Positions 4,909-63,194 are shown, numbered from the stretch's first letter. The stretch is 64,000 bases of DNA from IMGVR_UViG_3300023174_002543:303105-367104, one strand, 5' to 3'. Numbers and translations are program-made. The notes: generated from the sequence alone by a model not told the origin.

Positions 4909-6825
4909 ATGCCTAGACTCTCCTTATACCGTAGTGAAAAATCAAATGATTATAGATTTTTTGACAGAACCATAGCAGAAATGCTAGATGTTGGTGCGAC
5001 TGATTTGTACATTCACAAGTACAAGGGTATCCAAGACAATGGTCCTACTGATAGCTTGAGTACTCCTAGACAAACTAGTACCGATCCAACAAAGATACAA
5101 GACTTATTATTCTTAGAGAATCGTGACCGTGTATATGACAAAGACATTTATAGATTGCGAGGGCACTATAATGTTCAAAACTTGGATTTTGATTTAAGTC
5201 AGTTTGGATTATTCCTCAATAATGATACAATTTTTATCACAGTACATTATAATAAGATGATAGAAATTGTTGGACGTAAATTAATGGTTGGTGACGTTAT
5301 TGAATTACCTCATCTAACAGATTATCATCCATTAAATGAAACAATACCCACTAGTTTACGCAGATATTATCAAATTACAGATGGTAACTTTGCCAGCGAA
5401 GGATTTAGTAATACTTGGTATGCACATTTATGGCGTATTAAATGTGAGCCATTAGTAGATACTCAGGAGTTTAGTAATATTCTTAAGCAACCAACAAGTA
5501 CAGATAATTATCTAGGTGACTGGAATAAGACAGCCACATATGTCCCGGGATATGTAGTTAGTTATGGTAATAAAAATTATATCTCCCAACAAAATGTACC
5601 AGTAGGTACACCTTGTACAAAAATAGATCCATATACAGGGACATACGTAGTTAATTCACCGTTCTGGGCACTAGATACCGCAGACAATTTAAAAGATATA
5701 TTAGGTAGATATAATCAAAACATTGAAGTAAATGACGCACTGGTCGCAGAAGCTACTAGAATTCTTCCTAGTTCAGGGTACGATAGGCGTCAATTATATC
5801 TTGTACCGACTGATCCTAGTACAAGACAGCCGCAATTACCTAAGGGTATATTAACTAGCAAGGGTGCTCCATTAACCGCAACAGTTCAAATGGTTCAAGG
5901 ATCAAGATATAGTCCTAGCCCTGGTATCATTATTGGTGCTGGTGCATTGAAAAACTTTTTAGACCAACCAATCGGCAGTAGTGATTTATTAAAAGCCTTT
6001 ATGAAGATGACATTAGAGGTTGAACAAGTTGAGCCTGATAGATTAGACACTGGTGGTGGCCAAGTGTCAGGTGATTTTGTTATTGCCGCAAGTGCAACTG
6101 CATTAATTGATAGACCATACGGCACAAGTGATAATACATATTCAGTTTCTAGTGATTATCCAAGTAGCATTGTAACCACGGTTGTTGCTCCTGCAGGTGC
6201 TACAGTTATTAATGTATTAGAATCTCCCAAAGATGCACATCCAGGTATTGATTTAACTGCAACCATTACTACATTGAATGGTCAAACCGCTGAAGTATTT
6301 GATACCGGTACAGTAATTGTAAGTAGAGATTTAGTTAATAAAACGTTTACAATAAATAAACCAACATTGTTTGCAATGCCAGTTAACACAACAATTACTA
6401 TTGCGGGTCGTAGTTTTACCGGTACAATAACAGAAGAAATGGATTATCGTGCTGACGCTGATCCAAGATTCAACTATGTTGTAAATTATACTCCAACAGG
6501 ATTTGGTTATTCTGGTGGATACATGACAGGTGACGGGACTGCACCCAATGGATTACCTTTTGAATCAGGAATAACATTTCCTAATAATCCTGCATTAGGT
6601 GATTACTTCTTAAGAACAGATTATCTTCCACAGACTATGTATCGTTATGATGGTAGTTTATGGGTACAAATAAGTAAAAATGTACGTGCTAGTGTTGGAC
6701 CAAATAGTAATCAAACACAAATGGGTTCATTTATTAATAATACTGCAACTACAACGTTGACTGATGGTACTGTAATTCCACAAAGTCAAGCACTATCATC
6801 ACTATTCAAAATAACACCAGATTAA
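4909..6825 (+). CDS. Neck/head-closure protein (T4 gp14-like) with long C-terminal extension
   Basis: LSQFGLF..D.IFITVH, GDVIELPH motifs; upstream of gp15-like gene; ATAAATA upstream. Confidence 0.6.
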   Translation: MPRLSLYRSEKSNDYRFFDRTIAEMLDVGATDLYIHKYKGIQDNGPTDSLSTPRQTSTDPTKIQDLLFLENRDRVYDKDIYRLRGHYNVQNLDFDLSQFGLFLNNDTIFITVHYNKMIEIVGRKLMVGDVIELPHLTDYHPLNETIPTSLRRYYQITDGNFASEGFSNTWYAHLWRIKCEPLVDTQEFSNILKQPTSTDNYLGDWNKTATYVPGYVVSYGNKNYISQQNVPVGTPCTKIDPYTGTYVVNSPFWALDTADNLKDILGRYNQNIEVNDALVAEATRILPSSGYDRRQLYLVPTDPSTRQPQLPKGILTSKGAPLTATVQMVQGSRYSPSPGIIIGAGALKNFLDQPIGSSDLLKAFMKMTLEVEQVEPDRLDTGGGQVSGDFVIAASATALIDRPYGTSDNTYSVSSDYPSSIVTTVVAPAGATVINVLESPKDAHPGIDLTATITTLNGQTAEVFDTGTVIVSRDLVNKTFTINKPTLFAMPVNTTITIAGRSFTGTITEEMDYRADADPRFNYVVNYTPTGFGYSGGYMTGDGTAPNGLPFESGITFPNNPALGDYFLRTDYLPQTMYRYDGSLWVQISKNVRASVGPNSNQTQMGSFINNTATTTLTDGTVIPQSQALSSLFKITPD

Positions 6826-9782: not shown

Positions 9783-11408
9783 TTACCCTACAAGCCAATC
9801 AGTGCCGTTACTGAACACTGGCATATTATTTGATCCGGATCCACCCACTTGTGTTCCAAATGTAGTGGTATTAGCATCAGTAATAAATGCTCTAGTGCCC
9901 GCGCCAGCAATTGATGCAGTAGGTAAAACACTAAATATTGTGGGTATAGTTTTGAATGTAGTACCAACGCTAGTGATATTGGGTTGAGCCGCTGTTGTTA
10001 ATACACCAGTAAAATAATTACTAGTTATAAGATTGCCTAAGTTAGCATTGCCTGCACCTATATTTCCTGTTACAGTTAAACTAGTTAATGTACCGACGCT
10101 AGTAATATTAGGTTGTGCAGCATCTGTTACTGCAGCGGCTGAATCAGCAGTAACTGCACTAGTAGCAACAGTGGCTATTGTAGCAGTTCCGGCAGTTCCG
10201 GCACTAGTTGCATATGTAGCATTAGCAACTACACCAGTAATATTAGTACCTGCTATTGATGTTAATCGACTACCATTACCAATAATATAGTTGCCACTGA
10301 TGTTACCGGTAGCAATTACATTACTCGAATTAATATTAGTTGTAACACTTAAATTACCTAAGGTACCAACACTAGTAATATTGGGCTGTGCGGCTGTAGT
10401 AACCGTTCCGGCTATTGTAGCAGAATCAGCGACATTTGCACTATCAACTTGTCCTACTACATTTGATCCATCAATACTATAAGCAGTTTGAGCCTTAGGA
10501 ATTACTCCAGTGAACCCTGGAATATAATTTGCGTTCATAAATGTTTGAACGTCAAGATTACCATATGTAGCAATTCCACCGGCACCTACATCTGATACCC
10601 ATGTAAGATTACCTAAACCATCTGTACGTAACAATTGATTTGGTGTGCCACCACCAATTTTAATATCAGTAATTGAACCTAACACAACGTCACCTGAAAC
10701 TGTTAATTCAGCTAGTGTACCGACAGTTGTGATATTAGGTTGTGCATTTGCAGTTACAGTAATAGCGGTACTTGCTGCAACAGCAGTTAATAAACTACCA
10801 TTACCACTGAAATAATTACTTGTTGTGAGATTACCTAACGTAGCATTACCCGACGTGATGTTACCGGTTACACTCAAACTTACTAATGTACCTACACTAG
10901 TAATGTTAGGTTGTGCATTTGAATTAACAGCAATATTACCAGTAATATTTGTTGCAACTAAATTACCTGTTAAGGTAAGTGTGCTATTTGTTTTATTAAA
11001 CGTTAGGTTACTTACTCCAGTAGCATCACCTGCGTCATTAAATTGAATTTGTGTATTTGAACCACCGGCTAATCCTATGCCGCCACCTGCGCCCACTACC
11101 CAACCTAAATTTCCATTTCCGTCAGTCTGAAGTATATATCCGTTTGTGCCGCCGGCTATCTTAATGTTGCCTACATCTACGTCAATTACACCAGTAAGCT
11201 GACTAGAATTAATATGGCAGTTTGGGCTATCAGTTAATAACTGAGTAAGTGTAGGTTCTATTCCTACAGGAGGATCCAATACAGGATCGTTACCTATATA
11301 AGCATTTCTAGTGTCGGTAGCAAATCCTAATTCACCGATATCTAACTGAGGTAAATCTGATTCTGCGCCCGTGCGAATTTGTATTTTGGAGATTTGTACT
11401 ATTGCCAT
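9783..11408 (-). CDS. Tail fibre protein with repeated AQPNIT(S/T)VGT units
   Basis: N-terminal QISKIQIRTG..LPQLDIGELGFATD fibre-attachment-type domain; five AQPNITxVGT repeats; LQTDGxGNL motifs. Confidence 0.75.
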   Translation of the reverse strand: MAIVQISKIQIRTGAESDLPQLDIGELGFATDTRNAYIGNDPVLDPPVGIEPTLTQLLTDSPNCHINSSQLTGVIDVDVGNIKIAGGTNGYILQTDGNGNLGWVVGAGGGIGLAGGSNTQIQFNDAGDATGVSNLTFNKTNSTLTLTGNLVATNITGNIAVNSNAQPNITSVGTLVSLSVTGNITSGNATLGNLTTSNYFSGNGSLLTAVAASTAITVTANAQPNITTVGTLAELTVSGDVVLGSITDIKIGGGTPNQLLRTDGLGNLTWVSDVGAGGIATYGNLDVQTFMNANYIPGFTGVIPKAQTAYSIDGSNVVGQVDSANVADSATIAGTVTTAAQPNITSVGTLGNLSVTTNINSSNVIATGNISGNYIIGNGSRLTSIAGTNITGVVANATYATSAGTAGTATIATVATSAVTADSAAAVTDAAQPNITSVGTLTSLTVTGNIGAGNANLGNLITSNYFTGVLTTAAQPNITSVGTTFKTIPTIFSVLPTASIAGAGTRAFITDANTTTFGTQVGGSGSNNMPVFSNGTDWLVG

Positions 11409-12467: not shown

Positions 12468-12844
12468 GTTTTTCTTTATAGTTGTTTACAGCTGCTTTGA
12501 TAGCATCTTCTGCAAGTATGCTACAATGTATCTTAACTGGAGGTAATGCTAGTTCTTCGGCGATTTCGGAGTTTTTAATTGATCCGGCTTCATCTAGTGT
12601 TTTACCTTTTACCCATTCTGTGACGAGACTCGAACTTGCGATTGCTGATCCACACCCATATGTTTTAAATCGTGCATCTGTTATTACTCCATCTGTTACT
12701 TTAATTTGTAGTTTCATTACATCGCCGTCAGCCGCATGCCGGAGCACCAACCATCCCGGTGCCGACATGCGCTTCATCCTTGGCGAACGATCCTACATTT
12801 CTTGGGTTTTCATAGTGGTCTATTACTTTATCTGAGTAAGCCAT
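12451..12844 (-). CDS. iscU: Fe-S scaffold IscU, interrupted by a 7-nt stop-containing insert (candidate translational bypass; alternatively a pseudogene or assembly error)
   Basis: True start at 12844 (AGGAG RBS): [18 protein letters not shown]...VGAPACG then TGA (12730-12728). The remainder DVMKLQIKV...[10 protein letters not shown]...LPPVKIHC is in another frame from 12723. Confidence 0.9.
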
Positions 12845-13436
12845 TGTGTTCTCCTAATACTTTGTTTACAATATCTTCTGGTTGGAAGCGATCCCATTTC
12901 GTCCTATTTTCTTCCCCCAGAATCCATTGGAGATTACTTCTACCTCCAATGACTTTTGGATTTATACCTAAATCAAACCCCTGCTTAAAAGGAATAATAT
13001 GATCCAATTGATATTGGTTTTTCATTTTCCCAGTGTCCTTAGGTACTAAACCCTCTTTTTTCATAGCATATCTAGACCTATAGGTTTCTCTCCTACATAA
13101 GTTTCTATATGTTATAAATTCATCATTAATTTCTTTTTTGTGGCGCATGTTGTTGATGCGTCCTTCCCAATTTGGATTATTATGTCCGGTCCACTTGAAT
13201 GATTGAATTGGATTAGACAATCCTTTATTCCAACCTCGGCCCTTTTTTAATCCTTCGGTATTCAATTTAGATTTTTGTTCTTCTGTGAATTTGACACCTT
13301 TATTCCAAGGTTCATATTCTCCTCTGTTCAGGGGATTCTTACATTTTTGTGAGCAGAAATCTAAAAATCTAGGTTTGGTTTCAAACTTTTCATTACAGTA
13401 TCTACAATATTTAATTACACCATACTTGTTTTTCAT
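12828..13436 (-). mobile_element. Free-standing HNH homing endonuclease gene with PWNKG (NUMOD-like) repeats
   Basis: CxxC...FCSxxC, PWNKG/GWNKG, NPNWEG, QLDHIIP...SNLQ...EN HNH motif; own TAAATA promoter; 3' end overlaps the iscU RBS and start. Confidence 0.8.
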
Positions 13437-13466
13437 ACAAGTATTTATCACCTAGGCGTACCCGCA

Positions 13467-14575: not shown

Positions 14576-15067
14576 TTATTTTGTCAGTTTATCGAATCGT
14601 TGTTCCTGTAGGACTCTGGACAGACCTACAAAATGTTCTAATTCTCTGACAATATTGCTCTTTTTAATCGTTTCTTCATTGAGTTTCGTATATGCTAATG
14701 ACATTGAATCCGTGGTTCTGGTAGATTTTAACAACCGTTTCTGTATTTGGATATGAGAATCTGTACTTGCTAGTAATATATCCAATTCTTCAACTTTCTT
14801 AGCATATAGTATCTTATTGGATTTATCTAATGTAGCCCACATAACTGCATTACGTAAACTGTTAAATCTTTTAGTCGTATATGTATTAAATTTTTCTATT
14901 ATAAAATCACCGGATTTTAGGGTTTTAATTATATATTCATCATACATAATATATCCATTTTCGTCTGGATATATTATGTGCTTTTTAACCTCATTTATAT
15001 TATCTTTATCTAATATACGTTTAAGTATCTTAAACATTCTTTTTTCACTTCTCATGTATAACCTCAA
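14576..15067 (-). CDS. Hypothetical protein
   Basis: ORF fits the minus-strand gene run. Confidence 0.6.
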   Translation of the reverse strand: MRLYMRSEKRMFKILKRILDKDNINEVKKHIIYPDENGYIMYDEYIIKTLKSGDFIIEKFNTYTTKRFNSLRNAVMWATLDKSNKILYAKKVEELDILLASTDSHIQIQKRLLKSTRTTDSMSLAYTKLNEETIKKSNIVRELEHFVGLSRVLQEQRFDKLTK

Positions 15068-15509
15068 AATGTATGTTTTTTAATTCAGGAGTGGTATCTA
15101 AAAAGTTAGGCAGTTTATCCCACTCTGTTCCTACTTTAATCATGGGTACTCCGTCACAATCGTTAAACAAGTTACCCAATTCATTGATCCCATCATCATA
15201 TACTTTATTATGTGGTATAGACATCTCAAAAGACCAACATGTTTGTGCAACATCTTCATTATCAAATAAGAATCCAAATATATCTAACTCACCATCAAAA
15301 ATAATCATGTCTTCTATAGGATCTGTTATATCCTCGGGCTGGCTACGTAACGATAATACTTGTATTATAGTGTCAAAATTAGTCTGTGTATTTCTAGTCT
15401 TTTCCCAACGTTTAGTCTGCTCGGGTGTTCCATTGACGGGAGGTCGTCTGTTCGTGTTACCAGTCTTGGTAATATCAAATAATGTGTAACACTTTAATTT
15501 AAAACTCAT
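15045..15509 (-). CDS. Hypothetical protein
   Basis: ORF with TAAATA 4 nt before the ATG. Confidence 0.7.
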   Translation of the reverse strand: MSFKLKCYTLFDITKTGNTNRRPPVNGTPEQTKRWEKTRNTQTNFDTIIQVLSLRSQPEDITDPIEDMIIFDGELDIFGFLFDNEDVAQTCWSFEMSIPHNKVYDDGINELGNLFNDCDGVPMIKVGTEWDKLPNFLDTTPELKNIHFEVIHEK

Positions 15510-48277: not shown

Positions 48278-49237
48278 CTATTTAGTATAGAATGTGGAAC
48301 TCCTTATCCAATCGTAGTATAATTTAAATCCGGTTTCTATATCAATTTTGGGAGCAAAATCAAAATCTCTTTGGGCTTTATTAATAGATAATTGGTTTCG
48401 ACTAGGATAAGCAACATCCTTGTCATTTACCTGTAACATTCCACCATTGGCAGTCCCTAGTACTATTTGGGCGGCTTCTAATAATGTACGGCCGTTGCCC
48501 CTAGAAATGTTATATGTCTGATTATCTGTATTTTTACTTAGTGTAGCACTAACGATACCCTCTATAGTATCATCAATGTATGTAAAATCAAGTAATTCAT
48601 TTTGACCATTAACCTGTAATGTTTCCCCTCGTATCGCTGACAAAATAAACTTGCTGACAACTCTGTCTTCCACGTCACATGGGCCATATACAGCAGAAGG
48701 ACGTATAATGGTGTAATCAAAACAGCCACGGCGATGATAGTCTTTAACCAGTTGTTCTCCTGCAAGTTTAAGAATCCCATATTGGCCTTCTGGACGACAG
48801 TTCCAACTTTCATCAGCAGTAGTATTAAATGTGCCATATACCATTGAACTACTTAGATATACAAACTTCTTAACAGTATGCTTTTTTGATAGTTCCAGCA
48901 AGTTGAGTAACCCTTCACTCATTACACGACTTCCCTGCATTGGATTCGTGTTTACTATTTTCTGTCTTGGGAAACTAGCAGTATGCACTACTATGTCAAA
49001 TTTATATGTCTCAAATAGTGCATCAATATTTGGCATACAAATATCCATTGAATGCAAGAATACATTTTCACTTAATTTATTCTTACGTTCATTCATAACG
49101 TAATCTAGTTCTTGTTTAGGAATGACTCCGTAATTAGTTCTGTTATCTGTTATCACCACTGTACACCCTAGCTTGTCAAAACTATTTGCTAAGTTGTGTC
49201 CTATAAAACCCAAACCACCGGTAATTAAAATATTCAT
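48278..49237 (-). CDS. NAD-dependent nucleotide-sugar epimerase/dehydratase
   Basis: ILITGGLGFIG, YLSSSMVYG, YGILK (YxxxK), RPSAVYGP. Confidence 0.88.
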   Translation of the reverse strand: MNILITGGLGFIGHNLANSFDKLGCTVVITDNRTNYGVIPKQELDYVMNERKNKLSENVFLHSMDICMPNIDALFETYKFDIVVHTASFPRQKIVNTNPMQGSRVMSEGLLNLLELSKKHTVKKFVYLSSSMVYGTFNTTADESWNCRPEGQYGILKLAGEQLVKDYHRRGCFDYTIIRPSAVYGPCDVEDRVVSKFILSAIRGETLQVNGQNELLDFTYIDDTIEGIVSATLSKNTDNQTYNISRGNGRTLLEAAQIVLGTANGGMLQVNDKDVAYPSRNQLSINKAQRDFDFAPKIDIETGFKLYYDWIRSSTFYTK

Positions 49238-52321: not shown

Positions 52322-52641
52322 GTTATTACTGCTTTCTTTTCTGCACGGTCGCTATAAATTTTTTTACCATTAACCCGAATAAAATCTACTATACCTTGAG
52401 GTGCAGTTTCAAATGCTAACTTGATTGATTCCTCAGTCAAGTCATCATCTGCATTGAATGAATAAATTTCATAACAACGCTGACTATTAGCCTTAGCCCG
52501 TAGTATCATCATTTGAATGCTAGGAGTGTCAGGTTTTTTCTTTTCGGAAAGAATACTCCACATGTATTCTTTCTCCCACTTATCCGTGTCAAACAAAAAC
52601 TCAAGACCGTACATATCCCACATTGCAAGGTATCGTTTCAT
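52318..52641 (-). CDS. Hypothetical protein
   Basis: MWDMYGLE...LRAKANSQRCYEIY. Confidence 0.65.
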   Translation of the reverse strand: MKRYLAMWDMYGLEFLFDTDKWEKEYMWSILSEKKKPDTPSIQMMILRAKANSQRCYEIYSFNADDDLTEESIKLAFETAPQGIVDFIRVNGKKIYSDRAEKKAVIT

Positions 52642-53801
52642 TTACTTTTCTCTTTTAGTTTTTCTAGTTTATCATATAAATTCAAACCAGTCAAGTTTAT
52701 TTTGTAACTTAGTGCAAGTAATACACCAAAATTTGGTTGTACTTGCATAGCCTCACCCGGATGTTCATTCTTTGACATATCATATATAAAATTAAATTTT
52801 TTATTCTTCATTAATTGCTTTGAACATTTCTCTCCACGGTCTTTTGCAAAATCCCAAAAAGGTGTGTTGAACTTAGAACCAGCATAGTAATGTAACATTA
52901 TCATACTTTCAATTTCACGTAGTATTTCTAAATAAGAAGCATTATAATCTCTGTATGAGGTCTTACCTGACCATATGTCAATAGCTCCTCGATTAATAAA
53001 ATCCATTACTACAATAGATGTTGCTTCCATTGGTTCTAGAAAAAATGACGCATTACCGTTATATATTACCCTCTTAGAAAAATTCTCTTTTCTAATATAG
53101 TTTTTGAAAGTAAATGCATTAGTAACTTCACTCGGAATTAGGTCTAACTCTGCAAATACATTTTTAACATCTTCTTTGACTTCTTCTAATGTATTGATAG
53201 TATGGTTATACATGTAACCAATCGAACATCTGTTTCTTAGAGGAATAGCAAATATCCAACCATATGGTCTGGCTATTGCAAGTGTGTTATTAAACTTTAC
53301 ATTGTCCCAATAGCATTGTGTAACGTAAACTGCATTTACTGAAATGTAGTCTGACATATAAAAGTCATCATAGTTGTCAGGTTTACCGGAACAATCCATA
53401 ATAAAATCGGCATCAATGTCACTATGTGTTACATTTTTATCAATGATTTTAATATCATCTTTCAGGGCATCTATAACATAAGTTTGAAACTTACCAGCAT
53501 TAAAATGATATCCTACATTAGGCGGGTAAAAGGGGTGAATGAAATCTTTACCGCCCCAATTACGTTTATCTATTCCATATTTTATAGTACCATCTAGTTT
53601 TTCTAAATGGTCAAATGTGAAATTTAAATTATGCCATAATGCATTAGGAAAAGTATTAGTTGATCCTTCACCTACCGGTTGTGGTTTTATGGCGGAATCA
53701 AAATATAGTTCTACCTCGCAGTCTTTCATCCATCTATTAAAATGAGAGACTGCGAGAACCCCTGCAGTACCTGCACCTATTACTGCAATCTTTTTAGCCA
53801 T
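52638..53801 (-). CDS. Tryptophan-halogenase-like flavin-dependent enzyme
   Basis: IGAGTAG, VGEGS, TIKYG, DCSG, GWIFAIPL, FLEPMEATS. Confidence 0.75.
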   Translation of the reverse strand: MAKKIAVIGAGTAGVLAVSHFNRWMKDCEVELYFDSAIKPQPVGEGSTNTFPNALWHNLNFTFDHLEKLDGTIKYGIDKRNWGGKDFIHPFYPPNVGYHFNAGKFQTYVIDALKDDIKIIDKNVTHSDIDADFIMDCSGKPDNYDDFYMSDYISVNAVYVTQCYWDNVKFNNTLAIARPYGWIFAIPLRNRCSIGYMYNHTINTLEEVKEDVKNVFAELDLIPSEVTNAFTFKNYIRKENFSKRVIYNGNASFFLEPMEATSIVVMDFINRGAIDIWSGKTSYRDYNASYLEILREIESMIMLHYYAGSKFNTPFWDFAKDRGEKCSKQLMKNKKFNFIYDMSKNEHPGEAMQVQPNFGVLLALSYKINLTGLNLYDKLEKLKEKSK

Positions 53802-55087
53802 TAATTTTCATCATACAATGCGAATGTACCGAATGGGGGATTCGGATTCTTGTCACCATGAATGATCCAAGTAGTATCGCAATAGTCAGGGTCACCCCAA
53901 GAGCCACAGGGATATCCATCAGTAAACACAATCAAACGTTTTGGTTCAATAGCATTTTTCTTCAAGTAATCAAAGATACAATCAAAGTCAGTGCCACCGC
54001 CACCTTGTGGTTCGTAGTTTTCAATACTTTCCATGTTCTCGCTAGAGAAGTCTTGTGGGTTATATGTATCAGTATCAAAACAGAATACGTGAACCTTGTA
54101 GCCATCAAATGCATCCATCATGCCTGCAATTTCACCCAAGAATGCTTGTGCTTGTTTATTACTAATACTACCTGACATATCAAGTGATACAACAACATCA
54201 ATCTCTTCACCCGGTGTCATACCGGGCATGATAGCATCACTATGCCAACCTCTACGTGAGGGGCGCATCCAACTAAAGTCTGTGCGAATAGCACTAGTCA
54301 AATTAGTTTGAATCAGTTCACGCCAGGGCATGACTGGATTAGTATGTTGTTGAATCAATCGTTCAACACCTTTGGGCATTGTACCTGCCTCTGCACTTTG
54401 TGCGGCACTGATAATTGCTTGTTTGATTTCTTGACGGGTACGTTCACGTTCTTCAGGTGTCATTGGTTTCGGGCGTTTACCTTTACCTTTTTTGTCACCA
54501 TCACCTTCGCTATCGCCCTCACCCTCACCATCTTCACCATCCATGTGGTCATCAAGCAATTGGTCAATCAATGAATCAATGTTGATTTTTTGAACATTCT
54601 TCATCAAGTCATCATAGATTTCTTCAGCAGGTTTACCATCATACTTAGTTTCGTACAAGCAAGGGACTGTGGTAATGAATTGACCAACATTGTGTCGTTT
54701 CAAATCTGCATTAACTGCATAGTCATCAGCAATATTCCAGATTTGAGGATCACGTTCATTTCTACGACCCATGTGGTCATATACAACGTGCAATACTTCG
54801 TGACCAAACAAGAATTCAATTTCTTTTGGTTTCAACATTTTGATAAAACGACTATTGTAATAGAATGTAATGCCATCAGTTGCAGCAGTAGCGCACCATT
54901 CATCAGCATTAACCAATTTCATTCGTGTAGCAAGATTACCAAAGAATGAATGACGCAACAATAGACCAATACGTGCGCCTACTAATAGTTCACGTGCTTG
55001 TGCATCAATCTTAGGATCCATTGGACCGATTAGATTATCAAATTTACTACTACGTTTCTTTTTAGTTGGGGCAATTACATCACTCAT
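53801..55087 (-). CDS. vWA-domain protein with N-terminal HExxH metallopeptidase-like domain (DUF2201-type)
   Basis: TAATDG, HEVLH, DMSGSIS MIDAS, GGGGTDF, FTDG. Confidence 0.85.
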   Translation of the reverse strand: MSDVIAPTKKKRSSKFDNLIGPMDPKIDAQARELLVGARIGLLLRHSFFGNLATRMKLVNADEWCATAATDGITFYYNSRFIKMLKPKEIEFLFGHEVLHVVYDHMGRRNERDPQIWNIADDYAVNADLKRHNVGQFITTVPCLYETKYDGKPAEEIYDDLMKNVQKINIDSLIDQLLDDHMDGEDGEGEGDSEGDGDKKGKGKRPKPMTPEERERTRQEIKQAIISAAQSAEAGTMPKGVERLIQQHTNPVMPWRELIQTNLTSAIRTDFSWMRPSRRGWHSDAIMPGMTPGEEIDVVVSLDMSGSISNKQAQAFLGEIAGMMDAFDGYKVHVFCFDTDTYNPQDFSSENMESIENYEPQGGGGTDFDCIFDYLKKNAIEPKRLIVFTDGYPCGSWGDPDYCDTTWIIHGDKNPNPPFGTFALYDEN

Positions 55088-55113
55088 ATAGACTCCTTTA
55101 TTACAATAACTAT

Positions 55114-55142
55114 ATTATACACTATTATTTAATTATTGTCAA
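55114..55142 (-). promoter_or_regulatory. sigma70-type early promoter
   Basis: TTGACAATAATT...TATAAT, 17-bp spacer. Confidence 0.75.
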
Positions 55143-55309
55143 TTCAATCGCAAGCCACGAAATCCAGCATCATATGCAATTCTAGCATAATCGGGTGCGG
55201 AATCAATCTTATAAAATTCCATACCTTGGTCCTTTGTAAGTCCTTTTGCACGGACACGTTGGCCAATTGCGTAAAAATATTTCTTACCTGATAAAGCGGG
55301 GTTTCTCAT
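55139..55309 (-). CDS. Small hypothetical protein (56 aa, not in ORF track)
   Basis: MRNPALSGKKYFYAIGQRVRAKG...DAGFRGLRLN*; AAAGGA RBS. Confidence 0.6.
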   Translation of the reverse strand: MRNPALSGKKYFYAIGQRVRAKGLTKDQGMEFYKIDSAPDYARIAYDAGFRGLRLN

Positions 55310-55321
55310 TTTAAATCCTTT

Positions 55322-55357
55322 AAAAAAAGGGCGGGAACATTCACACTATCCCCGCCC
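55322..55357 (-). terminator. Intrinsic terminator
   Basis: GGGCGGG...CCCGCCC followed by U7. Confidence 0.7.
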
Positions 55358-55391
55358 GTTAAACGGTGTTTGCACACCGGGAGTCTGTGGA

Positions 55392-56492
55392 TCAGTTACC
55401 TGCTTCCACAATATATTTTCCATACTTCTTATGGAATTCGTCAAAGTTTTTCAATTGAGTTGGTTCAATTGGCAACTCATAAGTCTTCAATGCAATCTTA
55501 GCACCCATAACAGTCAACTCTGTTTCAAAGTTGTTCATCATGTAAGTGAAAAAGTTTTCAGCCATAGAGTGGAACTCTTTACTGTTTACTTTCTTATTGT
55601 CTACTGAATCTTTCAATTCATAGCACATTGCAATGGTCAATGCATACATAGCACTAATCTCTTTGATTGCCAAGTCTTTTACTTTACCTGACAAAATATC
55701 GCTAGGCTCGGGCATACGACCTGCAACTTTGCGGTGTGCTGCAAACTTAACTGCAAGACCTTCACCAACTGCACCTGCAATCAAATTGAATTGAGTATCA
55801 ACATCCATGTTAGCCTCGTCATTCAACAAGTCACTAACGAAACACCAACTACGGGGTGTCGCAAATGCACGGCTTGATGATTTAGCATCAAAGTCATACA
55901 TATCATTTTTTGCAAATGACAAATAACCAACAACGTCTTTATGAACATTGTTATTAACAGCCCAAGTCTGCCATGACGTAAAGTCAGGGCGCATTTCTAA
56001 GTGAATAAAACGATTAGCAAGGGGCATCGGCATACGATAAGTAACACCTTTGTCACTATCACGATTACCTGCCGCAACGATAACGACATTATCGGGCAGT
56101 TTGTATTTACCTACTCGACGGTTAAGAACCAATTGATAACCTGCCGCTTGTACAGCAGGGGGTGCTGAGTTCATTTCATCTAAGAATAGGACAATAACAG
56201 GATATTGCTTTGCAAATTCCTCATCAGGCAAGTCTACTGGGGGTGCCCAATCCATCTTACCATTCTCACGATTAAAGAATGGAATACCTCGAATGTCAGT
56301 AGGTTCCATTTGCGCCATACGCAAATCAATGACATGACCTTTTAGTTCTGCAGCAATCTCTGCAACAACATCACTCTTGCCGATTCCGGGAGGGCCCCAA
56401 AGAAAAACGGGACGTTTAGTTTTGAAGGCACTAAGAATTGCTTTTCGGGTTTGCACACTAGTGATTGTGTGATTGTCGCTAACTGATGCCAT
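55392..56492 (-). CDS. MoxR-like AAA+ ATPase
   Basis: WGPPGIGKS, LFLDEMN, AAGN, PLANRF, ATPRSW. Confidence 0.88.
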   Translation of the reverse strand: MASVSDNHTITSVQTRKAILSAFKTKRPVFLWGPPGIGKSDVVAEIAAELKGHVIDLRMAQMEPTDIRGIPFFNRENGKMDWAPPVDLPDEEFAKQYPVIVLFLDEMNSAPPAVQAAGYQLVLNRRVGKYKLPDNVVIVAAGNRDSDKGVTYRMPMPLANRFIHLEMRPDFTSWQTWAVNNNVHKDVVGYLSFAKNDMYDFDAKSSSRAFATPRSWCFVSDLLNDEANMDVDTQFNLIAGAVGEGLAVKFAAHRKVAGRMPEPSDILSGKVKDLAIKEISAMYALTIAMCYELKDSVDNKKVNSKEFHSMAENFFTYMMNNFETELTVMGAKIALKTYELPIEPTQLKNFDEFHKKYGKYIVEAGN

Positions 56493-57496: not shown

Positions 57497-57751
57497 TTAG
57501 TACATCAACTTAGCCATCAATAACAACTTCTCTAAGTGGTCAATGGCTTTGTTGATTTTATCTTTTTGACTATCACTATATGTAGTCTTGCGGGTGCGTC
57601 TTGCTTCAACTTCCAACTTGCTGAATTCAACGACCATACTGTCAATATTTTTTAACATCTTACGAAGGTCGGGATTATACCCTATACTTTCTAACTGGTT
57701 ACCAAGTGAGTTTTTAACCTCTTCCCAATCTAATGATGTTTCTACTTTCAC
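57497..57751 (-). CDS. Hypothetical protein
   Basis: 84-aa ORF. Confidence 0.6.
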   Translation of the reverse strand: MKVETSLDWEEVKNSLGNQLESIGYNPDLRKMLKNIDSMVVEFSKLEVEARRTRKTTYSDSQKDKINKAIDHLEKLLLMAKLMY

Positions 57752-57760
57752 AAAACATAT

Positions 57761-58759
57761 TTATGTCTTAGACACTAGGTTATCACGAAATATTTTCCAA
57801 GCATTTTCCCAAGACCAACGATAACTACCCTCTAACACTTTGTGTCTAGGTAAAAATAAACAATCAGTTACTGCTTGTTTTAAGTCTTCGTTCATGCACC
57901 CAGTAACACCCTCATCTATTACATCTTCTGGTCCTTGTACTGGATATGCGGCTACTGGTGTACCGCAAGCCATTGCTTCAATCATAACAATACCAAACGT
58001 TTCCCATTTGCTAGGGAATACAAATACGTCTGCGTTTGCATAATATTGCGCTAATTCTACTCCGGTCTTAAACCCAGTAAAGTGTACGTCAGGATATTGT
58101 TTTTTGTAGGTTTCTAACATTGGCCCATCACCTACCATAACTTTGAGATATTTAGGATAATCCATTTCTAAAAATGCTTCTAAATTTTTCTCTTTACTGA
58201 CCCTACTAACACATACTATATATTTGCTGGTTGTTTCTACTCTATGACTTATATTAAATATTGTTCGGTCAACACCACGTGTCCAGGGAATTATTTCGCC
58301 ATCAAATCCATGTGCTTTTAATTCTGCCACCATACTGTCCGTAGTAGTTAAAACTTTTCCACTGTGCTTGTGAAACCATCTTACTAATGGCCAAGTGATA
58401 AACTCAGGAATGCCAAATAATTTTTTTAACCCCTCAGGAAACTTAGTATGATAAGCGGTATTGTGGCGAATACTACCCAATGAAAGATATGTTCTAGCCC
58501 ACAAACCAAGAGGACCCTCTGTGGCGATATGGATATAATCCGGAGATATCTCCTCAATCTTCTTGCCCAAGTTCCTCGGATAGGCAATCTTGACTTCGTT
58601 GTAGCCAGGGCAATCAATGTAGCGGAACCACCCGGGATCCAACACCACAACGTTATAACCGTCACGAACAGCACACGCCTCAATATTTTTGTAGGTCGTA
58701 ACAACACCATTTATTTGCTCCGGTAAATTATCTGTTATAATTAAGATTGTTTTTGACAT
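57761..58759 (-). CDS. GT4 glycosyltransferase, Agt-like diacylglycerol glycosyltransferase
   Basis: PEQINGVVTT, IHIATEGPLG, TAYHTKFPE, RVSKEKN, ETFGIVMIEAMACGTPV. Confidence 0.85.
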   Translation of the reverse strand: MSKTILIITDNLPEQINGVVTTYKNIEACAVRDGYNVVVLDPGWFRYIDCPGYNEVKIAYPRNLGKKIEEISPDYIHIATEGPLGLWARTYLSLGSIRHNTAYHTKFPEGLKKLFGIPEFITWPLVRWFHKHSGKVLTTTDSMVAELKAHGFDGEIIPWTRGVDRTIFNISHRVETTSKYIVCVSRVSKEKNLEAFLEMDYPKYLKVMVGDGPMLETYKKQYPDVHFTGFKTGVELAQYYANADVFVFPSKWETFGIVMIEAMACGTPVAAYPVQGPEDVIDEGVTGCMNEDLKQAVTDCLFLPRHKVLEGSYRWSWENAWKIFRDNLVSKT

Positions 58760-58914
58760 GAACCCTCTACTTTAAAACTTTTAAATTTTAATTCATATTT
58801 CATTGTTGACAATGTTTGTTCGCAACTCTTTTGGTCGTTGAACAATAGTTCTATTCTTCCTGGTCGATCTTGCGGGTTGTTCATGTGTACTGCTATCAAT
58901 ATCATTAACCACAT
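58741..58914 (-). CDS. Small protein (57 aa) overlapping the plcP 3' end; not in ORF track
   Basis: MWLMILIAVHMNNPQDRPGRIEL...CEQ...EGSCQKQS*; AAGGAG 7 nt upstream. Confidence 0.65.
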   Translation of the reverse strand: MWLMILIAVHMNNPQDRPGRIELLFNDQKSCEQTLSTMKYELKFKSFKVEGSCQKQS

Positions 58915-59668
58915 TATCACGCTCCTTAGTCCAAGTTACTATTTCCCAACGACCATCATGGTGTTCTACTAGTGCTGTGCAACTTTCTACCCAGTCACCA
59001 TCATTCATATATGTAATACCATCTATATCTTTTATCTCAGCATGATGAATGTGTCCACAGATAACCCCATCAAAGCCTCTCTTGCGACAATAGCCAGCAA
59101 GATTATGCTCAAACTGAAACATAAAATCCACGGCTTTTTTAACACGATGCTTAAGATACTTAGACAAACTCCAGTAACCAAAACCCATGCGATGACGAAT
59201 CCAATTAAACTTACTATTAAGAGTGAGTATAAAATCATACAACCTATCTCCCAAGAATCCTAACCAAGGAGCTAGGCGTGTTATACCATCAAACAAATCC
59301 CCATGTACAACTAGATAGTGTTTACCATCTGCTCCTATGTGTTCTATTTGATTGTGTATTTCTATTAAGCCAAAACTAAAACCATATGGTATCATTGGTC
59401 TTAAGAATTCATCGTGATTGCCTGCAATGAATATTACTTTTGTACCACGCTTGGCATGACCTAATACTCTGCGTACTACGTTGGTGTGACTTTGTTTCCA
59501 ACGCCATTTGTTTTGTTGAATCTTCCATGCATCAATTATATCTCCTACAAGATATAATGTTTCGCAAGTATTATGTTTAAGAAAGTTGTTAAGGGATTCG
59601 GCTTTACAATCTTTTGTGCCAAGATGTACATCACTAATAAAAATAGCACGATATGTTCTCTGTGTCAT
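58793..59668 (-). CDS. PlcP-like phospholipase C (LpxH-like metallophosphoesterase)
   Basis: ISDVHLG, YLVGDIID, GNHD, HGD, CGHIH, NDGDWVESCTALVEH; adjacent Agt-like gene and Pho box. Confidence 0.8.
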   Translation of the reverse strand: MTQRTYRAIFISDVHLGTKDCKAESLNNFLKHNTCETLYLVGDIIDAWKIQQNKWRWKQSHTNVVRRVLGHAKRGTKVIFIAGNHDEFLRPMIPYGFSFGLIEIHNQIEHIGADGKHYLVVHGDLFDGITRLAPWLGFLGDRLYDFILTLNSKFNWIRHRMGFGYWSLSKYLKHRVKKAVDFMFQFEHNLAGYCRKRGFDGVICGHIHHAEIKDIDGITYMNDGDWVESCTALVEHHDGRWEIVTWTKERDNVVNDIDSSTHEQPARSTRKNRTIVQRPKELRTNIVNNEI

Positions 59669-59701
59669 GTACATATTTATCGGAAAAATCCGTTATAATG
59701 T

Positions 59702-59719
59702 ATGACAATTCTGTGACAC
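59702..59719 (-). promoter_or_regulatory. Pho box (PhoB site) upstream of plcP-agt
   Basis: GTGTCAC-AGAA-TTGTCAT, two half-sites with 11-bp period. Confidence 0.7.
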
Positions 59720-59727
59720 ACGTAGGT

Positions 59728-59747
59728 AGTCCCGGCTAGCCGGGACT
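59728..59747. terminator. GC-rich perfect inverted repeat (probable terminator or processing hairpin)
   Basis: AGTCCCGG-CTAG-CCGGGACT just after the 59757-59981 ORF; no U-tract. Confidence 0.5.
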
Positions 59748-59756
59748 TGGTTAAAA

Positions 59757-59981
59757 TTACTTTCTAGTTCTAGTATTATCTATACTTGGTTCAATCTTGG
59801 GTTCATCTATGGTGTGTACAGGAGGGTTAACATGCCAGCTGTCTAAAGTAAATATACGTATTGGTTTCCAATATTTACTTAGTAAATTATTAATTACAAC
59901 CGCCGCCCCAATTACTACAATAAAACCTAGTGCAGTTAAAATACTACCTGCCAAAAATACTGCTGATTGATCCATGTTCAT
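59757..59981 (-). CDS. Small single-TM membrane protein
   Basis: Hydrophobic N-terminal helix, KYWKP. Confidence 0.65.
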   Translation of the reverse strand: MNMDQSAVFLAGSILTALGFIVVIGAAVVINNLLSKYWKPIRIFTLDSWHVNPPVHTIDEPKIEPSIDNTRTRK

Positions 59982-59992
59982 GATAATGTTCC

Positions 59993-60121
59993 TTAAATAG
60001 TTTCGTAATCTTCTTTACCTACACCGCATTCCGGGCATAGAAAATCTGCAGGCAAATCTTCCCATTTACCTTCTATTTCTTCATCGTGGATATGTCCACA
60101 TACTACGCATACGTGTTCCAT
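59993..60121 (-). CDS. Rubredoxin (42 aa, not in ORF track)
   Basis: MEHVCVVCGHIHDEEIEGKWEDLPADFLCPECGVGKEDYETI*; CxxCG...CPxCG; TAATG-coupled to rubrerythrin. Confidence 0.9.
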   Translation of the reverse strand: MEHVCVVCGHIHDEEIEGKWEDLPADFLCPECGVGKEDYETI

Positions 60122-60585
60122 TATTGAACCTCCTGTAACATTTTTTGATAAGCAGTAGCATGACGTTCTTCAACTCGTTTTAGTGCAGAGAAACGTTTTT
60201 GTGCTTTGTCTAATACTGCCTTAAATTGTTCAGCGTGTTCTTTGCTTTCTGCAATTTGACCACGCATTTCTTGTGCTACTTCATTAGCACCTTCCATCAT
60301 AGCATCTGCTTCCATGTTAGGATACATAACAGTGAATTCTTGTGTTTCACCTTCAATAGCCTTTTCTAAACATTGCACTGTTGTTGGTTTGCCGATTAGT
60401 AATTCTAAATGCCCCCATGCATGTAGGATTTCTTGGTCTGCGGTATGTTCAAAGTGTTTTGCAACATCCTCGAACCCCTCTTCCCTTGCTATTTTTGCAA
60501 AATAACGATACTTGATATGAGCCATACTCTCACCTGCAAGTGCGTATTCTAAGTTTTTTAGTGTCGCTGATTGATTTTGTGACAT
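60121..60585 (-). CDS. Rubrerythrin (short, di-iron domain only)
   Basis: ALAGESMA, EILHA, EGETQE.TVMYP, ESKEHA, VEERHA. Confidence 0.88.
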   Translation of the reverse strand: MSQNQSATLKNLEYALAGESMAHIKYRYFAKIAREEGFEDVAKHFEHTADQEILHAWGHLELLIGKPTTVQCLEKAIEGETQEFTVMYPNMEADAMMEGANEVAQEMRGQIAESKEHAEQFKAVLDKAQKRFSALKRVEERHATAYQKMLQEVQ

Positions 60586-60698
60586 AGTTTTCCTTTATTC
60601 GAACTGAATTCTACTTTATATTGATAGATAAGTCAACAAGTTTTGGATATATTCCCATTTGTATTAATTGTGTCATATTATACGTCATAAATATCATA

Positions 60699-61358
60699 AT
60701 GAGACCCACAATAGCCCTATTCATTGCTGATCCAAAATGCTCAGTTCAGAGCGGAAATGGTATTATAAAAGCATTGGGAGAACACTATAACTTCAAATTA
60801 TTCTCAAAAAATGCATTAGAAGATAATTTCTTCGAGGGAGTAGATATAGTAGCAGTTCCCGGAGGACTCGGAGATAGTGACAGCTACAATACTCTATTGA
60901 AACATAGTGCAAATCGTATCCGTAAATTTGTTAGTAACGGTGGACGATATCTTGGGATATGTATGGGGGCATATTGGGCTGATAGTCACTACTTCAATAT
61001 ACTAGATGATGTTAGGGTAGTTCAATATATCAAACAACCAAATACTTGTACTAGACGACCACATGCTAAAAACATGCCTGTCATGTGGAAGGATCGATAT
61101 GGTATGGTAGAACCATACAAGATGTTTTTTTATGATGGATGTGCATTAGTAGGTGATAATACTAAATTTGAAACCGTTGCGACTTATAGTAACGGTGATG
61201 CGATGGCTATTATACAAAATCGTATAGGATTAATAGGGTGTCATCCAGAAAGTGAACAGTTTTGGTATGATAGTTACAGTTGGATGCGAGGTTACTATCA
61301 CCGCGGCCAACATCATACACTATTATTAGATTTTGTTAATTCTTTGATGAAGAGGTAA
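60699..61358 (+). CDS. Class I glutamine amidotransferase-like (BPL-N-type) protein
   Basis: VPGG, YLGICMGAY nucleophile elbow, GCHPE; start revised to 60699. Confidence 0.8.
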   Translation: MRPTIALFIADPKCSVQSGNGIIKALGEHYNFKLFSKNALEDNFFEGVDIVAVPGGLGDSDSYNTLLKHSANRIRKFVSNGGRYLGICMGAYWADSHYFNILDDVRVVQYIKQPNTCTRRPHAKNMPVMWKDRYGMVEPYKMFFYDGCALVGDNTKFETVATYSNGDAMAIIQNRIGLIGCHPESEQFWYDSYSWMRGYYHRGQHHTLLLDFVNSLMKR

Positions 61359-61536: not shown

Positions 61537-62088
61537 TTAGAAACTACGTGTGTACTGTAGACGCCATGCATCTTTTTCTTCATCACCATAGCTACGGCTC
61601 CAACGAACTGCAACTGCATCTTGTTTAGTAAGCGCATAACCTACTGCAACGTGACCGCGTGTGGTTCTGAAACTATTACCAGACTCAAACGCATTGCGAT
61701 AACGAGCACCAACATCACCGGTGAAACCAGCTCCAAGAGGAATCTTAACACCACCATCAACTGCATAATGACTAAAGTGGGTACTGCTAGTTACTTTTTC
61801 ACCCAAACGTCCACCTAAATAGAACATATCGAAAGTTCTTTTGACACGTACTTCTAGTCCTTGAGAAATAGAACCACTGCCATATGCAGTTTGACTATTT
61901 TCCATTTTGATGCTGTAATCCATTGCGCCATCCTTAGTGCCGACAACGATTGCTTCTTTAATATTGTTTGCACCAGTTGTACGATTATTTTCATCAGAAT
62001 ATTCCAATGATGCATAGCCACCTGAGGCCATTGCGGAACCTGCAATCAATAAAGTTGCGAATGTTGTTGCTAGTTTTGTAAATCTCAT
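61537..62088 (-). CDS. Outer-membrane beta-barrel (porin-like) protein
   Basis: Signal peptide ending AMA, alternating beta-strand pattern, C-terminal QYTRSF beta-signal. Confidence 0.75.
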   Translation of the reverse strand: MRFTKLATTFATLLIAGSAMASGGYASLEYSDENNRTTGANNIKEAIVVGTKDGAMDYSIKMENSQTAYGSGSISQGLEVRVKRTFDMFYLGGRLGEKVTSSTHFSHYAVDGGVKIPLGAGFTGDVGARYRNAFESGNSFRTTRGHVAVGYALTKQDAVAVRWSRSYGDEEKDAWRLQYTRSF

Positions 62089-62483: not shown

Positions 62484-63194
62484 CTATGTGATTTGTCTAG
62501 CATTAGCTAACCCAAACAACGTGAATATGGTCAACCACATATAACCCACATCAAATTCATACCACTTCTTGCTTAGGCGAGGACTTGCTGGGTTTAAGTG
62601 GTGATTGTTGTGTAATTCTTCACCGCCAATAATAATACCCCAAGGACTAATGTTTCTGCTATCATCTTTAGTTTCACCATTACGATATCCAATCCAATGT
62701 CCAATGCCGTTAATGACGCCAGCTGCCCAGAATGGTATCCATATCATTTGTATGCCCCATATTAATATTCCCCAATATCCAAAGACTACCGTGTTGAACA
62801 AAAAGAGAATGCTAATGCCAGATCTGGAGTAAGGAGTGTATATGTTGTGCTCCATCCAATCAGAAGGAGTACCAACACCATATGTATCAACCATATCTTT
62901 ATCTTTTGATGCTTCATGGTATAATAATGCTCCTTTAAAAAATACTTGTTTAATTCCGTACACATGCGGGCTGTGTGGATCACCCTCTGTATCACTATAT
63001 CTATGATGCTTACGATGTATTGCTACCCATTGCTTGGTGACCATACCTGTGGTTAACCATAACCAAAAGCGCATGAAGTGACTTAGTATAGGGTGAAAGA
63101 TTATTCCTTTGTGTGCCTGACCTCTATGTAAGAATAGGGTGACACAAATGATAGTAATATGTGTTACTATCAATGTATAGATTATATATGTCAT
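62484..63194 (-). CDS. Delta-9-type fatty acid desaturase
   Basis: Three His boxes HRGQAH, HRKHH, HNNHH; GDPHSP. Confidence 0.92.
   Translation of the reverse strand: MTYIIYTLIVTHITIICVTLFLHRGQAHKGIIFHPILSHFMRFWLWLTTGMVTKQWVAIHRKHHRYSDTEGDPHSPHVYGIKQVFFKGALLYHEASKDKDMVDTYGVGTPSDWMEHNIYTPYSRSGISILFLFNTVVFGYWGILIWGIQMIWIPFWAAGVINGIGHWIGYRNGETKDDSRNISPWGIIIGGEELHNNHHLNPASPRLSKKWYEFDVGYMWLTIFTLFGLANARQIT

Follow-up and report, generated by a model that had tools for sequence, protein, structure and literature searches.

A 367-kb freshwater jumbo phage carries homologues of the two bacterial genes that exchange phosphorus-containing membrane lipids for sugar lipids, a plcP-like metallophosphoesterase gene followed by an agt-like GT4 glycosyltransferase gene. 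They lie behind a conserved direct repeat that is likely a binding site for the host's phosphate-starvation regulator, PhoB. The arrangement suggests that the phage frees membrane phosphorus when its host is starved. That the genes are plcP-agt homologues is very likely, that the repeat is a PhoB operator is likely, and that the purpose is phosphorus mining is about as likely as not. In the absence of activity, binding or expression data for this phage, the enzyme activities, PhoB binding, induction by low phosphate and the benefit to the phage are inferences from the bacterial pathway. Taken as a whole, this explanation is nevertheless the most probable of those considered. The stretch analysed (the window) is 64,000 nucleotides from IMGVR_UViG_3300023174_002543:303105-367104, and the complete genome is 367,104 bp. 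The original prediction of a Pho-box-controlled PlcP plus Agt-like operon with an upstream TAAATA late motif was confirmed as to its elements, all on the minus strand where they had been placed, and each part of its interpretation that could be tested by computation was supported, except that the spacing of the box from the promoter core and its match to Pho boxes of the actual host are not settled.

The metallophosphoesterase ORF extends from 58793 to 59674 (293 aa), though the likely true start is the second ATG at 59668 (291 aa). This ATG lies 5 nt after an ATAAATA motif, as in 13 other genes of the phage, and gene callers on other assemblies chose the 291-aa form. The product matches Pfam Metallophos. 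Its metal-binding motifs are intact, with SDVHLG beginning at residue 14, VGDIID at 43, GNHDE at 85, VHGD at 123 and CGHIHH at 206, and residues D15, H17, D45, N86, H87, H124, H208 and H210 are invariant in a 51-sequence alignment.

Phage homologues are annotated as LpxH, automatic database names being ‘UDP-2,3-diacylglucosamine pyrophosphatase LpxH’, and viral ‘lpxH’ is listed under LPS biosynthesis in tables of AMGs (PMC9611531, PMC10653327). A true LpxH acting with a glycosyltransferase would alter lipid A or LPS synthesis. The predicted fold is indeed LpxH-like: the AF2 model has a mean pLDDT of 86.4 and its top 25 PDB matches are all LpxH, with TM 0.47-0.64. However, identity to these solved structures is only 17-22%, and as PlcP shares the fold it does not discriminate between the two families. 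The scores do. The protein reaches 46.4 bits against a cut-off of 134 for the LpxH model NF003743, and 36.8 bits against a cut-off of 190.35 for TIGR01854. On TIGR01854 the phage proteins score 32-37 bits and the PlcP paralogues of Burkholderia, Pseudomonas and Caulobacter 35-45 bits, while the true LpxH of Burkholderia, Pseudomonas and Limnohabitans genomes scores 182-336 bits. Genomes that hold a close homologue also hold a separate, high-scoring LpxH. The ML tree separates all PlcP-like proteins from LpxH (98/84*), with the phage clade inside them (99/98*), next to Pseudomonas and other Gammaproteobacteria. The grouping with true LpxH that would have refuted the original prediction was not seen, and LpxH identity is very unlikely. 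[Membership of the PlcP and Agt families rests on orthologues from the same genera as the experimentally characterised proteins and not on direct identity to the latter; the 14 control genomes gave no loci. As a proxy, tblastn gave E values of 1e-85 to 1e-94 against 80 proteobacterial homologues, including Pseudomonas and Burkholderia cepacia-complex members.]

The GT4 ORF (57761-58759, 332 aa) starts 33 nt downstream. In the gap, 3 nt before its start codon, is a Shine-Dalgarno-like AGAGGG (58763-58768), which indicates one transcript for both genes; AAGGAG-type words are the most enriched words upstream of genes in this genome. The protein matches Pfam Glycos_transf_1, Glyco_trans_1_4 and Glyco_transf_4, and has an EX7E motif, ETFGIVMIE, at residues 253-261. 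The 80 closest named bacterial loci are 47-59% identical in the esterase, and in about 57 of them a GT4 that is 38-44% identical over the full length of the phage GT4 is immediately downstream. What follows plcP in the bacterial loci that lack a GT4 could not be resolved because of high-GC ORF noise. In five bacterial genomes the best hit of the phage GT4 is always the plcP-adjacent gene (235-269 bits, 42-44% identity), the next-best paralogue scoring 82 bits or less. These loci include Burkholderia latens, and Burkholderia cepacia-complex genomes carry the plcP-agt-dagK operon characterised in B. cenocepacia (PMC13691135). The phage GT4 is thus the orthologue of the plcP-linked Agt gene. A further ATAAATA (57758-57764) overlaps the GT4 stop codon and lies 6 nt before the GTG start of the next ORF (57497-57751); it marks the likely downstream boundary of the two-gene unit.

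Though the downstream partner of plcP is the GT4 in this phage, related phages repeatedly have an unrelated 239-aa GT2 in its place, with at least 8-11 switches between GT4 and GT2 on the esterase tree. No bacterial counterpart of the GT2 was found at E 1e-5. Such exchange is more typical of surface-diversifying genes than of a housekeeping salvage route. It raises the possibility that the genes, while still plcP-agt homologues, serve to re-surface the host envelope, to block superinfection by other phages or to change sensitivity to grazers or antimicrobials, with the choice of glycosyltransferase setting which glycolipid is displayed. Lipid remodelling changes predator-prey and phage-attachment outcomes in bacteria (PMC9457565, PMC9938194), and a DesA-family lipid desaturase nearby, at 62484-63194, points to broader membrane tailoring. 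However, the conserved, phased Pho-box-type operator described below is hard to explain if phosphate status were irrelevant, the known bacterial glycolipids are made as membrane surrogates for phospholipids under phosphate stress (PMC4796936), and in Pelagibacter phage Mosig, an independent lineage, the esterase homologue is divergently paired with pstS. Re-surfacing as the main purpose is unlikely, though the two purposes are not mutually exclusive.

The putative Pho box, GTGTCACAGAATTGTCAT (59702-59719), comprises two direct half-sites, TGTCAC (59713-59718) and TGTCAT (59702-59707), with an 11-bp period (TGTCACAGAATTGTCAT at 59702-59718), in sense orientation 22 nt upstream of TAAATA. The strict form, TGTCA-N6-TGTCA, occurs exactly once on both strands of the whole genome, at this site. 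The relaxed form, TGT[AC]A[CT]-N5-TGT[AC]A[CT], occurs twice against about 1.9 expected in shuffles, so the count alone is unremarkable and it is position and conservation that carry the argument. [The second relaxed copy, at 48421-48437 (+), lies inside an epimerase gene on the other strand and was set aside as chance.] In 42 of 65 distinct related phage loci the relaxed repeat lies within 80 nt upstream of the esterase gene on the sense strand, that is 42 sites in 5,200 nt against 22 sites in 822,028 nt elsewhere, about 300-fold denser. Its distance to the TAAAT core takes only the values 11 nt (28 loci) or 21-22 nt (14 loci, including the window). The locus, site included, is base-for-base identical in three independent assemblies. 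A possible degenerate third half-site, TATAAC (59692-59697; 5 of 6 matches to TGTAAC), 10 nt after the second, would fill the extra helical turn between the box and the promoter core. The evidence for it is weak, being sequence only, though one related phage locus, L064, has a clear third half-site, TGCAAC, in phase. Further upstream, between a 74-aa ORF and the box, is a hairpin, GTCCCGG-CTAG-CCGGGAC (59729-59746), that may insulate the operon from upstream transcription. It has no T-run and was not called by a terminator scan, but several related loci (L039, L064, L065, L076) have a canonical GC hairpin plus T-run at the same place.

The box matches 15 of 17 positions of the repeat upstream of pstS in one Burkholderiales genome (locus L186, TGTCACGGAATTGTCAC). 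Upstream of pstS, the hallmark Pho-regulon gene, 28 of 34 Burkholderiales loci carry the same repeat (at least 11 of 12 core positions), in both TGTCAY and TGTAAY forms, A and C being equally common at position 4 (29 vs 27). In the loci read in detail it is followed by 10 nt and a TANNAT-like, −10-like hexamer. The pstS comparison replaced an uninformative one, in which the strict pattern was found upstream of only 1 of 80 bacterial plcP genes; by eye, Pseudomonas (TGTCAT-type), Chromobacterium and Deefgea loci have looser TGTCA-type repeats, and several Burkholderiales plcP genes sit behind another gene. Bacterial plcP operons are Pho-regulated (PMC4796936, PMC8528852), and host PhoBR control of phage genes has precedent in cyanophages, though in one cyanophage EMSA showed predicted Pho boxes to be unreliable predictors of PhoB binding (PMC10976474). 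No OmpR/PhoB-type DNA-binding domain was found encoded by the phage, so the binder would be a host protein. It remains possible, though improbable, that the repeat is a real operator for another OmpR-family response regulator, or for an unrecognised phage protein, that sets timing or responds to a different environmental input. Most relatives carry TGTAAY and not the textbook TGTCAY, many OmpR-family regulators probably bind direct repeats of 10-11-bp period, and the operator is fused to a phage-type −10 motif. The window's own site, however, is the canonical TGTCAY form. The host is unidentified, and a Burkholderiales-type freshwater host is inferred only: the esterase tree places the phage clade next to Gammaproteobacteria in the strict sense, the terminase points only to jumbo phages of Proteobacteria (PA5oct, Phosso, Atu_ph07), there are no tRNAs in the window, and cluster names carry no organism.

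The ATAAATA ahead of plcP (59674-59680) is the phage's general promoter-like motif. It lies within 60 nt upstream of 55 of 376 crudely called genes, a 15-fold enrichment, including those for the terminase and a tail-fibre-like protein, and in 24 cases it ends 4-7 nt before the ATG. Here it ends 5 nt before the second ATG, so the plcP mRNA would have little or no leader. That it is a ‘late’ promoter is inferred, and if a phage late sigma factor reads it, the canonical PhoB-sigma70 contact would not apply. A sigma-70 scan gave only background-level hits and no canonical promoter, and no terminator was called. Moreover, the box in the window is 22 nt from the −10-like core, not the 10-11 nt of bacterial pstS promoters and 28 related loci, and PhoB would sit one helical turn further upstream than at a textbook PhoB promoter. 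RNA evidence is weak. No RNA run holds this phage, and while lake metatranscriptome assemblies hold 80-95% similar fragments of relatives' plcP and GT4 genes, contigs give no 5′ ends and DNA carry-over cannot be excluded.

The proposed mechanism, inferred from the bacterial pathway, is that in a phosphate-starved host phosphorylated PhoB binds the two TGTCAY half-sites and helps RNA polymerase start at the −10-like TAAATA element. PlcP, an LpxH-fold Mn-phosphoesterase, would then cut phospholipids into diacylglycerol and a phospho-head group, from which host phosphatases can release phosphate for nucleotide and phage DNA synthesis. The GT4, translated from its own Shine-Dalgarno site, would glycosylate the diacylglycerol with a UDP-sugar to phosphorus-free glycolipids, and the membrane would therefore stay functional until lysis. 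No phage-encoded phosphatase or PstS was found to complete a salvage route; the phage does encode PhoH, which has no box.

The module is not rare. All 8,000 scored candidates in the protein database matched, the best being 80-100% identical, and it lies on contigs of 170-513 kb from lakes, though a megablast of the locus against isolated phages found nothing. Phosphorus often limits freshwater and marine microbes, and a phage genome is phosphorus-dense. A broader reading, which can only be tentative, is that a widespread clade of freshwater jumbo phages carries a self-contained, host-PhoB-gated salvage module. In it, a hybrid promoter fuses a host Pho box, at a fixed helical phase, to the phage's own −10 element, phosphate stripped from host phospholipids helps to pay the 734,000-phosphorus cost of each 367-kb genome, and a swappable glycosyltransferase cassette (GT4 or GT2) decides which phosphorus-free lipid replaces them. 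This would be the first viral lipid-renovation pathway and a new class of auxiliary metabolic gene, and viral ‘lpxH’ genes in AMG catalogues would be mis-assigned to LPS synthesis. It could also affect lipid-based readings of phosphorus stress in lakes. No published report of a phage plcP-agt operon was found.

Several known systems bear comparison. With LpxH, the esterase shares the calcineurin-like metallophosphoesterase fold with a helical lid (predicted here) and the metal-binding motifs, but it falls below the LpxH model cut-offs and in a separate clade. The ‘putative UDP-2,3-diacylglucosamine hydrolase’ of Pelagibacter phage Mosig EXVC030M and the homologue in Synechococcus phage S-SRM01 are homologous esterases in isolated phages, 49% and 36.5% identical, respectively, and that of Mosig groups with the jumbo-phage clade (91/60). 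No glycosyltransferase follows in those phages, neither esterase was interpreted as PlcP, and the intergenic repeats in Mosig are of TTAACA type. The ATAAATA motif resembles T4-type late promoters, which appear to be −10-only (TATAAATA; NATAAATA in marine T4-like phages), in lying upstream of many genes, including structural ones. Here, however, it is coupled to an upstream putative response-regulator box at a fixed helical phase.

The cyanophage pstS/phoA and other genes under host PhoBR control (P-SSM2; S-PM2d, PMC10976474) are similar in that a phage gene for coping with phosphorus scarcity is placed behind a binding site for the host's PhoB, which in the present case is inferred. The host phylum and box type differ (proteobacterial TGTCAY/TGTAAY against cyanobacterial PyTTAAPyPy), as does the strategy, here an inferred internal salvage from membrane lipids in place of uptake from water. 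The bacterial lipid renovation operon (Sinorhizobium meliloti SMc00171; Phaeobacter MED193_17359; SAR11 HTCC7211 PB7211_983/960; P. aeruginosa PA3219/PA3218; B. cenocepacia BCAL2364-2366) has the same two protein families in the same order, and a Pho box is reported upstream (PMC4796936, PMC8528852). Identity of the phage esterase and GT4 to proteobacterial members is 47-59% and 38-44%, respectively, while characterised PlcPs are only about 46-47% identical to each other (PMC8528852). The phage version differs in being encoded by a 367-kb virus without a dagK partner, in having the phage's own ATAAATA motif as promoter core with apparently little or no mRNA leader, and in the exchange of its GT4 for a GT2 in related phages.

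The window is the last 64 kb of a 367,104-bp IMG/VR virus record with 36.5% G+C that is rated complete by CheckV. It encodes a T4-type large terminase, a DnaB-like helicase, thymidylate synthase and a tail-fibre-like protein. The terminase is closest, at 50-53% identity, to those of jumbo phages of Proteobacteria, namely PA5oct, Sinorhizobium phage Phosso and Agrobacterium phage Atu_ph07, and the same DNA occurs in freshwater and lake metagenomes. Reading 5' to 3' on the minus strand, a 74-aa ORF (59757-59981) is followed by a hairpin (59729-59746), the 18-bp site GTGTCACAGAATTGTCAT (59702-59719), 22 nt of spacer, ATAAATA (59674-59680), a metallophosphoesterase ORF (first ATG 59674, second ATG 59668, stop at 58793), a 33-nt gap holding AGAGGG, a GT4 ORF (58759-57761) and a second ATAAATA that overlaps the GT4 stop just before the next ORF. 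The original prediction had placed the adjacent metallophosphoesterase and GT4 genes, with a two-half-site Pho box and a TAAATA motif upstream, at 57761-59719, and its coordinates are correct. The locus, site included, is identical in three independent assemblies, on contigs of 513 kb, 188 kb and 3.4 kb. [In the largest of these, an ENA contig of 513,110 bp, a locus identical in its gene order and in the promoter region compared lies at 189-202 kb, and the true genome may therefore be larger than the record rated complete, or that contig may be a concatemer or chimera.]

The operon's neighbours are rubrerythrin plus rubredoxin (59993-60585, minus strand), a BPL_N/GATase-like protein (60621-61358, plus strand) and a 183-aa protein (61537-62088, minus strand) with a signal peptide and a C-terminal aromatic residue that looks like a small outer-membrane beta-barrel. 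Relatives carry Fe-SOD, NifU and IscA-type genes nearby, and together these suggest an oxidative-stress and iron-sulfur theme. Within 52638-56492 on the minus strand, a tryptophan-halogenase-like flavoprotein (52638-53801), unusual for a phage, lies next to a DUF2201/VWA-type protein (53801-55087) and an AAA ATPase (55392-56492), the latter two looking like a CobT/CobS-type pair.

Though phage homologues of the esterase are annotated as LpxH, the protein is PlcP-like. Pfam sees only the general Metallophos family, and the two NCBIfam LpxH equivalog models give 46.4 and 36.8 bits against cut-offs of 134 and 190. A search with TIGR01854 of bacterial genomes that hold a close homologue shows two separate genes. 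One is a true LpxH, at 336 bits in Pseudomonas, 231 in Burkholderia and 182 in Limnohabitans, and the other is the homologue of the phage protein, at 35-45 bits in Burkholderia, Pseudomonas and Caulobacter. In a maximum-likelihood tree of 49 proteins the four LpxH sequences are separated from all PlcP-like proteins (98/84*), though one LpxH row had a very long branch because its ORF was over-extended, and the LpxH rows are long in general. The 13 jumbo-phage proteins form one clade (100/99*) that lies inside the bacterial PlcP-like group, in a starred set with Pseudomonas, Nevskia, Thiomicrorhabdus and an Azotimanducaceae MAG (99/98*). All metal-binding residues are invariant across 51 diverse family members. 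An AlphaFold model (mean pLDDT 86) finds LpxH as its 25 best PDB matches, at only 17-22% identity. The protein therefore works on the predicted LpxH scaffold but belongs to a different subfamily, and true LpxH is excluded. Viral 'lpxH' (K03269) is counted under LPS biosynthesis in AMG tables from Lake Baikal viral metatranscriptomes and from surface waters of the Eastern Mediterranean (PMC9611531, PMC10653327), and in the light of this locus some of those genes may be of the PlcP lipid-remodelling type.

The GT4 is the Agt partner, and the pair corresponds to the bacterial operon. The 80 best named bacterial loci come from Beta-, Alpha- and Gammaproteobacteria, with the esterase 47-59% identical to them, and in about 57 of these loci a GT4 that is 38-44% identical to the phage GT4 over its full length follows immediately. 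One such locus is in Burkholderia latens. Burkholderia cepacia-complex genomes carry the plcP-agt-dagK operon, whose B. cenocepacia version was shown genetically and by lipidomics to make glycolipids under phosphate stress (PMC13691135). In five bacterial genomes the best match of the phage GT4 is always the plcP-adjacent gene (235-269 bits), while other GT4 paralogues score 82 bits or less. The EX7E motif is present at E253-E261. This is the 'type 2' plcP-agt arrangement of Sebastian et al. (PMC4796936). Characterised PlcPs are themselves only about 46-47% identical to each other (PMC8528852), so the phage protein is well within the range of the family.

The partner is not constant among relatives. 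Downstream of the conserved plcP, related jumbo phages carry either the GT4 (28 loci) or an unrelated 239-aa GT2 (37 loci, e.g. 5907-6626 of the related locus L003) whose best, weak, NCBIfam hit is the TIGR04283 glycosyltransferase, and two distinct loci lack a GT. The type switches at least 8-11 times on the esterase tree, so this is a recurrent cassette exchange, and no bacterial plcP-linked counterpart of the GT2 was found at E 1e-5. The exchange hints that the identity of the surrogate lipid is under diversifying selection, and it keeps an envelope re-surfacing role alive as a partial rival to the phosphorus-salvage interpretation. A second membrane-lipid-modifying gene, 3 kb from the operon (62484-63194, minus strand), encodes a 236-aa DesA-family fatty-acid desaturase with HRKHH and HNNHH histidine boxes (391 bits against a cut-off of 400, covering model positions 9-242 of 385).

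The repeat upstream of plcP is conserved and probably an operator of Pho-box type. The strict form TGTCA-N6-TGTCA occurs once in the genome, at this position. The relaxed form occurs twice, about the chance number, and its other occurrence (TGTCATTTACCTGTAAC, 48421-48437, plus strand) lies inside the NAD-dependent sugar epimerase/dehydratase gene (48278-49237, minus strand), on the opposite strand, and is probably chance. Eighty IMG/VR loci with 77-88% identical esterases were compared. Among their 65 distinct upstream regions, 42 carry TGT[AC]A[CT]-N5-TGT[AC]A[CT] on the sense strand within 80 nt of the start, which is 300 times the density elsewhere in the same loci, even though the flanking sequence and the upstream gene differ. 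Many of the others have a one-mismatch version or lack the promoter motif altogether. The number of nucleotides between the repeat and the TAAAT core is 11 in 28 loci and 21-22 in 14, and never anything else.

No OmpR/PhoB-type DNA-binding domain is encoded by the phage. As most relatives have TGTAAY rather than TGTCAY, pstS, the hallmark Pho-regulon gene, was examined in 34 Burkholderiales loci. Of these, 28 carry the same direct repeat at 11 or more of 12 core positions, with A and C equally common at position 4 (29 vs 27), and in the loci read in detail, 10 nt and a TANNAT-like hexamer follow. In one pstS locus (L209) the arrangement is TGTAATAATTCTGTAAT + 10 nt + TATGAT, and in another (L186) it is TGTCACGGAATTGTCAC + 10 nt + TAATCT, the window's site matching the latter repeat at 15 of 17 positions. 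Both phage variants therefore have the form of ordinary Pho boxes of that bacterial order, though a cyanophage study found Pho-box prediction unreliable without EMSA (PMC10976474). A non-PhoB regulator is possible but is disfavoured by the pstS comparison. The match also makes a freshwater Burkholderiales-type host plausible, though this is not shown.

ATAAATA is the most enriched non-Shine-Dalgarno word upstream of genes in this genome, being present before 55 of 376 crudely called genes, a 15-fold enrichment (in the window e.g. 9783-11408, 12828-13451, 15045-15509, 60699 (+)). It ends 4-7 nt before the ATG in 24 cases, or 16-29 nt before it with a Shine-Dalgarno-like word in between. The former implies many transcripts with little or no leader in a phage that otherwise uses strong AAGGAG ribosome-binding sites. 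Genes carrying the motif include the terminase and a tail-fibre-like gene, and outside the window it precedes a single open reading frame of about 8,150 codons (113949-138410 of the record, plus strand). It appears to resemble the T4-family late promoter TATAAATA/NATAAATA, though 'late' is an inference. For plcP the motif ends 5 nt before the second ATG. The real start is therefore probably 59668, the start also chosen by gene callers on other assemblies, and the mRNA would have little or no leader. In 28 relatives the layout is box, 11 nt, TAAATA and then 0-8 nt to the first ATG found, which mirrors the bacterial pstS promoters apart from one extra base. In the window the box sits one helical turn further upstream, and a TATAAC (5 of 6 matches) may act as a weak third half-site. 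The promoter may be read by host sigma-70 with PhoB, by a phage late factor, or by both.

The mechanism proposed, which does not rest on any measurement of activity, binding or regulation for this phage, is that under phosphate starvation host PhoB-P activates the two-gene transcript. PlcP would convert phospholipids into diacylglycerol plus phospho-head groups, and Agt would then cap the diacylglycerol with glucose or glucuronate, as shown for the bacterial enzymes (PMC4796936, PMC8528852, PMC13691135). By rough estimate, each genome copy needs about 734,000 phosphorus atoms; an E. coli-sized cell holds roughly 2 x 10^7 phospholipids, and small lake bacteria perhaps a tenth of that. The membrane would therefore be worth from a few to a few tens of genome copies. 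Independent support for a phosphate link comes from Pelagibacter phage Mosig EXVC030M, where the homologue (49% identical) is divergently paired with pstS. [The intergenic region between the two genes (5842-5991 of locus L001) holds TTAACA-N5-TTAACA direct repeats with an 11-bp period, which may be a SAR11-type Pho box shared by both.]

Full-text searches found no paper linking plcP to phage genes. Host-PhoB control of phage genes is known from cyanophages, and Pho-controlled phage auxiliary genes are a known theme. What the present locus would add to it is a new pathway, membrane-lipid renovation, together with an unusual operator-promoter fusion and a swappable glycosyltransferase.
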